Positions 42,518-42,775 of a DNA stretch of 64,000 bases are shown piece after piece. The notes under the pieces are model-generated. The model ran no database searches. It had not been told where the DNA came from and saw only the letters and a program-made list of their open reading frames with translations. The translations under genes and the position numbers were made by a program. Source of the stretch: Pavona decussata (Eukaryota); NCBI GenBank assembly GCA_977016875.1, contig CDRNST010000436.1, positions 1,612,001-1,676,000 of the forward strand. Direction: 5' to 3'. Positions within the stretch are counted from its first letter, which is position 1, and each line of letters starts with the position of its first letter.

Positions 42518-42775
42518 CTTTGTTCATTCTTCGTTGTCACGCGGGCAAACGTCTGTATTTAGGCCCATCCGGAATCATTGCTACGTGCATTTGGTAGACA
42601 ACTTACTCGTGTTGGTTGTTCTAATTTCTGCTGTGCTACACCGTGCTGACGAGAGCCAACCAGCTCGAAACAGCTGTCCACGGTTGCCGCATTCTGTTGA
42701 TTCTCGGTTTGGTCTCTATCATGTCGCTGTCGAGTTAAGTTTTCTACGCAGTCAGATCAGCCTTGCAGTCCTTTG
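42518..42775 (+). mobile_element. Retrozyme-like 253-nt monomer insert
   Basis: GC-richer non-coding segment bounded by CTTTG direct repeats (42518-42522, 42771-42775) that interrupts the host element and contains a hammerhead ribozyme. Confidence 0.7.
42633..42692 (+). ncRNA. Type I hammerhead ribozyme (minimal stem III)
   Basis: Stem I ACCGUG/CACGGU plus distal GUGC/GCAU; core CUGACGA 42646-42652; stem II GAGC-CAACCA-GCUC; GAAA 42667-42670; stem III AC-AGCU-GU; GUC cleavage site after 42678. Confidence 0.88.

Follow-up and report, generated by a model that had tools for sequence, protein, structure and literature searches.

Positions 42508–42777 of the window (the whole 64-kb stretch of Pavona decussata DNA that was analyzed) probably hold a dead-on-arrival, 5′-truncated copy of a non-LTR retrozyme, inserted in another repeat and belonging to a family that is presumably copied by an enzyme of the Penelope-like element (PLE) type. 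Taken alone, the locus has little weight: it would be one more truncated copy in a hammerhead retroelement family of a kind known from corals and other animals, and a by-product of the element’s spread rather than a complete ribozyme unit. The evidence comes from the ribozyme and its fold, from the repeat family and the way its copies begin and end, and from the repeat into which the copy was inserted.

The ribozyme is the best-defined part of the locus. In a Rfam scan of the 64-kb window, RF00163 (Hammerhead_1) was the single family found, with one match, at 42640–42684 on the + strand. This match spans the full model (positions 1–45), and its 42.0 bits (E = 2.5e-7) exceed the gathering score of 34. 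The parts of the ribozyme are as follows:

42640–42684, + strand: type I hammerhead ribozyme, by its RF00163 score, family identity, and cross-family covariation
42640–42645 with 42679–42684, + strand: helix I, 6 bp
42646–42652, + strand: core CUGACGA of the hammerhead
42653–42656 with 42663–42666, + strand: helix II, 4 bp, closed by a 6-nt loop
42667–42669, + strand: GAA of the hammerhead core
42670–42671 with 42676–42677, + strand: helix III, 2 bp, within the palindrome at 42670–42677
42678–42679, + strand: predicted self-cleavage site GUC/C, after C42678, at position 39 of the Rfam model alignment

The core is complete, with CUGACGA, GAAA, and GUC standing for the conserved pattern of CUGANGA, GAAA, and an NUH triplet, and helix I is open. 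Beyond the six pairs of helix I lies an internal loop, followed by four further pairs. The first-pass annotation of this DNA had described all catalytic core nucleotides, three helices, an internal loop in stem I, a GUC cleavage site at 42678, and a 2-bp stem III placed within a palindrome as in double hammerheads, and it had named an Infernal scan with Hammerhead_1 as a check. On all these points, it agrees with the Rfam alignment and with the folds described below.

The 2-bp helix III is held by the palindrome ACAGCUGU. In the minimum-energy fold of the hammerhead monomer, part of the core is mispaired with the helix III strand, while cofolding of two copies gives an 8-bp intermolecular helix III and a double hammerhead, at −42.9 versus 2 × −19.4 kcal/mol. 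Folding thus predicts that the active double hammerhead is a dimer, and that the core of the monomer is mispaired. With its helix III of 2 bp set in a palindrome, the ribozyme has the canonical architecture of metazoan type I hammerheads and is of the dimer-dependent type. Single motifs with a very short helix III are known to cleave poorly and to be active as double hammerheads (PMC4209133; PMC7229834). A search of the supplement text of PMC7229834 for the window ribozyme sequence gave no text match.

Compensatory changes preserve helices I and II across the hammerhead-bearing families of this genome. We compared 19 distinct hammerheads that this genome carries in different repeat families; they were picked by core motif and not by pairing. 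Standard pairs fill 94.7% of the pair cells, versus 21–33% in slid controls, and the covariation score was reached by 0 of 500 shuffles. Both-sided changes occur at five pairs; for instance, helix II is found as GAGC/GCUC, GUUC/GAAC, and GCCC/GGGC. The palindrome ACAGCUGU is nearly invariant across the hammerhead families of the genome.

The ribozyme belongs to a large repeat family. The interval noted in the first-pass annotation gave 1133 first-look matches in the 602-Mb assembly, and scored copies are 85–92% identical. Most other copies reach further upstream than the window copy, and several continue past the usual 3′ end with the very sequence that opens the longest copies. Copies that cross this ...GAGTCA/TTTATATTTTTGG... 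join define a head-to-tail unit of ~498 nt. The reference unit used here is a natural copy (L007, minus strand, 1488–1985), no consensus having been built, and the hammerhead core begins at its position 364. Copies with two hammerheads carry them at a spacing of 495–505 nt; in L029, consecutive hammerheads are 501 nt apart. Such tandem units, each with a type I hammerhead, are seen elsewhere in the family (L029) and are absent at the window locus. The unit has no ORF, and the family is non-coding, lacks an LTR, primer-binding site (PBS), or polypurine tract (PPT), and generates target-site duplications (TSDs) of 7–14 nt. The general class proposed earlier, a kind of non-LTR retrozyme, is therefore retained on the grounds of a type I hammerhead, a non-coding family, and head-to-tail copies. 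The search for tandem and differently permuted genomic copies that had been suggested along with it gave a divided answer: head-to-tail units do exist, but they are ~498 nt long, and their 3′ ends are fixed rather than permuted.

The RNA of a complete unit is predicted to be strongly self-paired. For the full cleavage-to-cleavage monomer (L029:1583–2083, minus strand, 501 nt), the computed folding energy is −164.3 kcal/mol (z = −5.38), a stability matched by 0 of 100 shuffles. The dominant element of this structure is a long helix that pairs unit ~196–214 with unit ~433–448. The inverted 16-nt match between these two stretches was also considered as the terminal inverted repeat of a DNA transposon and was rejected, since the match is internal and forms the long helix of the monomer.

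The ends of family copies were analyzed in 37 copies, from the 29 loci that a search with the window element had retrieved. The 3′ ends fall at two places: 29 of the 37 copies end at unit position 476 or beyond, and six end at position 70–95 of the next unit, the remaining two being short pieces with 3′ ends elsewhere. Each of the two 3′ termini lies 9–15 nt past the motif CCTTGCAGA...TTTG. The 5′ starts, on the other hand, are scattered between unit positions 1 and 433; at 659 and 702 nt, two copies are longer than the unit. Since the query spanned unit ~225–482 and the sample consists of its top-scoring matches, 3′-truncated copies are under-sampled; such a bias cannot yield ends concentrated at two exact sites, so the concentration is not due to sampling. 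At the boundaries of many copies, TSDs of 7–14 nt start directly after ...AAATTTGA(G), with lengths of 14 nt in L022, 12 nt in L011 and L036, 11 nt in L005, 10 nt in L002, and 9 nt in L029 and L009. The best direct-repeat match has a mean of 6.1 nt in the copies versus 4.4 nt in the control. Pairs of abutting copies (gap of at most 39 nt) are head-to-head in six cases and tail-to-tail in none, and most of the head-to-head pairs have a 3′ terminus on both arms, facing outward.

Two minor observations concern the surroundings of family copies. Three pairs of loci, L019/L020 (C62:515143 and C62:577951), L037/L038 (C198), and L088/L089 (C262), each show the same copy with the same flanks, 15–360 kb apart on one contig, and are segmental duplications or assembly duplicates carrying retrozyme copies. 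At another locus (L003, G000:C233), a long (ATT)n/(ATC ATT)n microsatellite begins right after a family copy, a single case that fits the microsatellite insertion bias of PLEs (PMC8557442).

Against this background, the window copy is a fragment. The locus is organized as follows:

42444–42507, + strand: left part of the host repeat, opening with a G-run (436 first-look matches; all copies start at the G-run)
42508–42777, + strand: 5′-truncated copy of the ~498-nt hammerhead family, unit ~215–492, by homology to other copies and by mapping on L007
42508–42527, + strand: ambiguous 5′ junction zone of ~20 nt, unit ~215–235, similar in the hammerhead family and the host repeat; contains the left CTTTG (42518–42522)
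42761–42777, + strand: conserved 3′ terminus of the family (CCTTGCAG...TTTGAG), by alignment; contains the right CTTTG (42771–42775)
42789–43357, no strand assigned: right part of the host repeat, merging into an inverted repeat of foldback or MITE-like type (1426 first-look matches)

On the L007 unit, the copy maps to positions 215–485 with 86% identity; it makes up ~54% of a unit and has a 10-nt internal deletion relative to most copies. The missing 5′ 214 nt include the partner strand of the monomer’s long helix, and the fragment itself folds no better than shuffled sequence (z = +0.19). Neither a second hammerhead nor any further piece of the family occurs in the 64-kb window; with no partner hammerhead in 64 kb, the window locus cannot release a monomer or a circle.

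The left and right parts of the host repeat are contiguous in L074 and L079, and the hammerhead copy is therefore a real insertion. At the left junction, copies of the host repeat align through 42527 and copies of the hammerhead family from 42508, the ~20-nt similarity between the two repeats reading TTTCAG....TTTG.TCAT. In a genome search, the sequence of this junction was spanned nowhere else. At the right junction, 42778–42788 (9–11 nt) belongs to neither the hammerhead family nor the host repeat in the alignments. A TSD of the window copy was sought both for a simple insertion and for a chimeric insertion starting from the G-run, with chance-level matches in both; the best exact match between the two junction zones is 5 nt, as compared to a shuffled mean of 5.5 nt, and 86% of the shuffles give at least 5 nt.

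The host repeat has features of its own. It opens with 14–17 G (window 42444–42527; L062–L072), continues with a CArG/TATA-like stretch (CCCTTATATGGGCTATATAGG), and contains several sub-repeats of ~35 nt (...TTTTGGTC..AAA.AGGGTAT...). The foldback or MITE-like element at 42827–43344, whose family accounts for ~1426 first-look matches, consists of two arms of ~250 nt (~42827–43076 and ~43100–43344) and opens with GGGGCCCGTTTCTCGAAAGTCCCGG; in a self comparison, the arms are 88% identical over 520 nt in inverted orientation. A second copy of the hammerhead family, with the alternative 3′ terminus, lies at nearly the same relative place in the host-repeat family at another locus (L083, G000:C114:1659015–1662179, at ~1660–1840). 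Together with the window, these two cases may reflect a target preference for the sub-repeats of the host.

These results bear directly on the first-pass reading of the locus as a one-unit, 253-nt insert: a complete retrozyme monomer, circularly permuted and derived from a circular RNA, with a duplication of CTTTG at its edges. There are reasons why this reading was attractive. The CTTTG motif does occur at 42518–42522 and 42771–42775, the ribozyme sits in the middle of the interval, and known metazoan retrozymes measure 170–400 nt (PMC7229834). However, the unit of this family is ~498 nt, of which the window copy is a fragment (unit 215–492) that lacks the stable fold of the complete monomer (z = +0.19). 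Homology to the family runs from 42508 to 42777; it sets in 10 nt before the left CTTTG and takes in the right one, so that the two repeats, although present, lie inside family-homologous sequence and do not bound the insert. The right CTTTG aligns with the conserved family terminus ...ATTTGAG, and thus belongs to the element; in other copies, real TSDs start after this terminus. A 5-nt match is, moreover, what chance provides (shuffled mean of 5.5 nt), which speaks against a 5-bp TSD. Circular permutation is not seen either, as 3′ ends are gathered at two fixed sites (29 + 6 copies) and 5′ starts are scattered. We therefore regard a 253-nt circular monomer as having next to no chance of being correct. 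A short direct repeat around a ribozyme should be compared with other copies before it is called a TSD or a circle junction.

The left junction could also have arisen at the DNA level, through recombination or repair between a hammerhead copy and the host repeat across their ~20-nt similarity. We find such an event quite improbable. In its favor, the junction falls where the two families resemble each other over 20 nt, the genome has it only once, and no TSD was found. Yet the right end coincides exactly with the standard 3′ terminus of the family, and the host repeat resumes ~11 nt further on, as an insertion would give. Moreover, microhomology is common at the 5′ junctions of truncated retrocopies. 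We read the left junction as 5′ joining at microhomology, in keeping with a truncated retrocopy.

The window copy is unevenly diverged. All 45 positions of the ribozyme match the family majority, as do 60 of the next 61, giving one difference in 106 positions; elsewhere in the copy, 24 of 164 positions differ (Fisher p = 5e-5). The same conserved block is present in other subfamilies, which are 80–86% identical to the reference unit. Among scored matches, no closer relative or source subfamily of the window copy was found above 88–92% identity. Our reading is that another source subfamily, with constraint on its ribozyme region, gave rise to the window copy, and not that the copy has been constrained at this locus. 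Local constraint or gene conversion could also have produced the uneven divergence.

Such a pattern invites the idea that the ribozyme was exapted, and is kept to cut read-through RNA upstream of a long coiled-coil gene on the same strand (ORF 53631–61172), perhaps in trans through its palindrome with abundant family RNAs. In addition to the near identity of the ribozyme and the following 61 nt to the family majority, this idea draws on the shared strand and on the nearly invariant palindrome. However, the conserved block is common to all subfamilies, and the pattern is therefore explained by constraint on the source elements. The copy is at least 5 kb from the gene, amid other repeats, and single motifs of such a kind cleave poorly (PMC4209133). 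Exaptation is, on balance, very unlikely. Because the hammerhead families of this genome have kept the helix III palindrome nearly unchanged, pairing in trans is conceivable: retrozyme RNAs could pair with the solitary hammerhead and cut read-through transcripts at 42678. We give this very little credence; if true, dispersed truncated copies would be RNA-guided cleavage sites upstream of genes. Two runs of N (47573–48026 and 52091–52299), masked or gaps, lie between the insert and the + strand ORF at 53631–61172. Six ORFs located up to ~7 kb from the insert were searched for Pfam domains, and none was found.

No long PLE-type or RT/GIY-YIG ORF adjoins the sampled copies of the family; the ORFs next to them are host genes or unrelated fragments of LINE or LTR type. 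Within the sample, therefore, the family looks non-autonomous. The genome as a whole is rich in GIY-YIG frames, with 933 candidates, 150 of them over the Pfam cut-off, and open frames of up to 1041 aa. Many of these frames form head-to-head pairs 1–7 kb apart (e.g., C78:6667729/6669173, C67:976013/980246, and C179:254191/258096), some with open frames of 800–1041 aa. They are presumably Penelope-like elements, some of which may be intact. None of the listed GIY-YIG frames comes as close as a few hundred bases to a listed RF00163 place; a GIY-YIG match ~2 kb from the L018 copy is a 137-aa fragment.

The case for a PLE-type enzyme comes from the architecture of the insertions. PLE insertions are marked by strong 5′ truncation, partial tandems, and an adjacent inverted 5′-truncated copy (PMC8557442). 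All of these are found at the level of the family, the window copy showing 5′ truncation only. Hammerheads are a regular feature of PLE pseudo-LTRs (pLTRs) (PMC4209133), and, according to a 2026 preprint, the non-LTR retrozymes of animals originated from PLE pLTRs (doi 10.64898/2026.07.22.740005). From the insertion architecture and this literature, we infer a link between the ~498-nt family and PLEs. The two fixed 3′ termini sharing CCTTGCAGA...TTTG, the scattered 5′ ends, the copies of more than one unit, and the head-to-head pairs lend support to PLE copying of animal retrozymes.

The main competitor for this role is a LINE-type reverse transcriptase (RT) that recognizes the 3′ end of the unit and makes truncated retrocopies in a SINE-like manner, as for SM-alpha of Schistosoma. 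SM-alpha, which bears a hammerhead, is described as SINE-like and as carrying a promoter of its own. LINE- and PLE-driven insertion have in common variable 5′ truncation, fixed 3′ ends, and TSDs of variable length, and LINE-like RT and endonuclease ORFs lie near some copies (L013 and L033). The family 3′ end, however, carries no poly(A) or simple-repeat tail. LINE twin priming is not known to give head-to-head pairs with 3′ termini on both arms, or partial tandems. These two features match the description of PLEs instead (PMC8557442), and the literature ties animal retrozymes to PLE pLTRs (doi 10.64898/2026.07.22.740005). LINE-type copying is thus unlikely, and a PLE-type enzyme is the reading we carry forward.

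In the mechanism that we propose, on the basis of family architecture and the literature, family RNA, either multimeric or circular, would be reverse-transcribed from a fixed 3′ site by a PLE enzyme. At the window locus, synthesis would have stopped or switched at unit ~215–235, and the ~20-nt similarity of the target repeat would have let the 5′ end join. The single ribozyme would have no role at this locus. If the region is transcribed, its RNA might be cut after C42678, either inefficiently or once the palindromic helix III has joined it to a second hammerhead RNA. Solitary retrozyme copies are described as common offspring that are incapable of further transposition (doi 10.64898/2026.07.22.740005).

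Among known systems, the family is most readily compared with the metazoan non-LTR retrozymes of Cervera and de la Pena (2020, PMC7229834), which have been reported with type I hammerheads in the coral Acropora millepora and other animals. Both are non-coding, carry a type I hammerhead, and form head-to-tail multimers; low GC, TSDs longer than 4 bp, and a strongly self-paired monomer RNA (predicted here) are also shared. In contrast, the ~498-nt unit exceeds the 170–400 nt range of metazoan retrozymes, and the 220–245 nt of A. millepora (PMC7229834). The sampled copies are mostly solitary and 5′-truncated instead of forming long arrays, and the window copy has only ~54% of a unit and one ribozyme.

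A second comparison is with the hammerheads of PLE pseudo-LTRs and their truncated solo copies (Cervera and de la Pena 2014, PMC4209133; Craig et al. 2021, PMC8557442; Li et al. 2026, doi 10.64898/2026.07.22.740005). Features in common are 5′ truncation, partial tandems, an adjacent inverted 5′-truncated copy, opposite-strand hammerheads 100–700 bp apart, and a short palindromic helix III that needs a dimer. Unlike PLEs, the sampled copies have no RT/GIY-YIG ORF next to them, and the hammerhead is of the canonical form (helix I of 6 bp, helix II of 4 bp) rather than a min-HHR with a long helix II.

Newt and salamander satellite 2 and Schistosoma SM-alpha (cited in PMC7229834 and PMC4209133) likewise have type I hammerheads with a very short helix III, which need a second motif, joined as a double hammerhead, for efficient cleavage. 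They differ from the family in host lineage, unit sequence, and unit length. Plant LTR retrozymes (PMC4918200) resemble the family in being non-autonomous, and, putatively, in having a ribozyme-delimited RNA that circularizes and in relying on the RT of another element. Their type III hammerheads in LTRs, PBS and PPT, and 4-bp TSDs, however, have no counterpart here.

A sister family in the same genome (L042–L060; e.g., G000:C6:5144116–5147665) has a layout like that of the window family, with a hammerhead spacing of 505 nt (e.g., L044/L045) and a compensated helix II (GUUC/GAAC), and is 71–75% identical to the window copy over 42634–42769. With 25 hammerheads identical over 49 nt, it looks younger than the window’s family.
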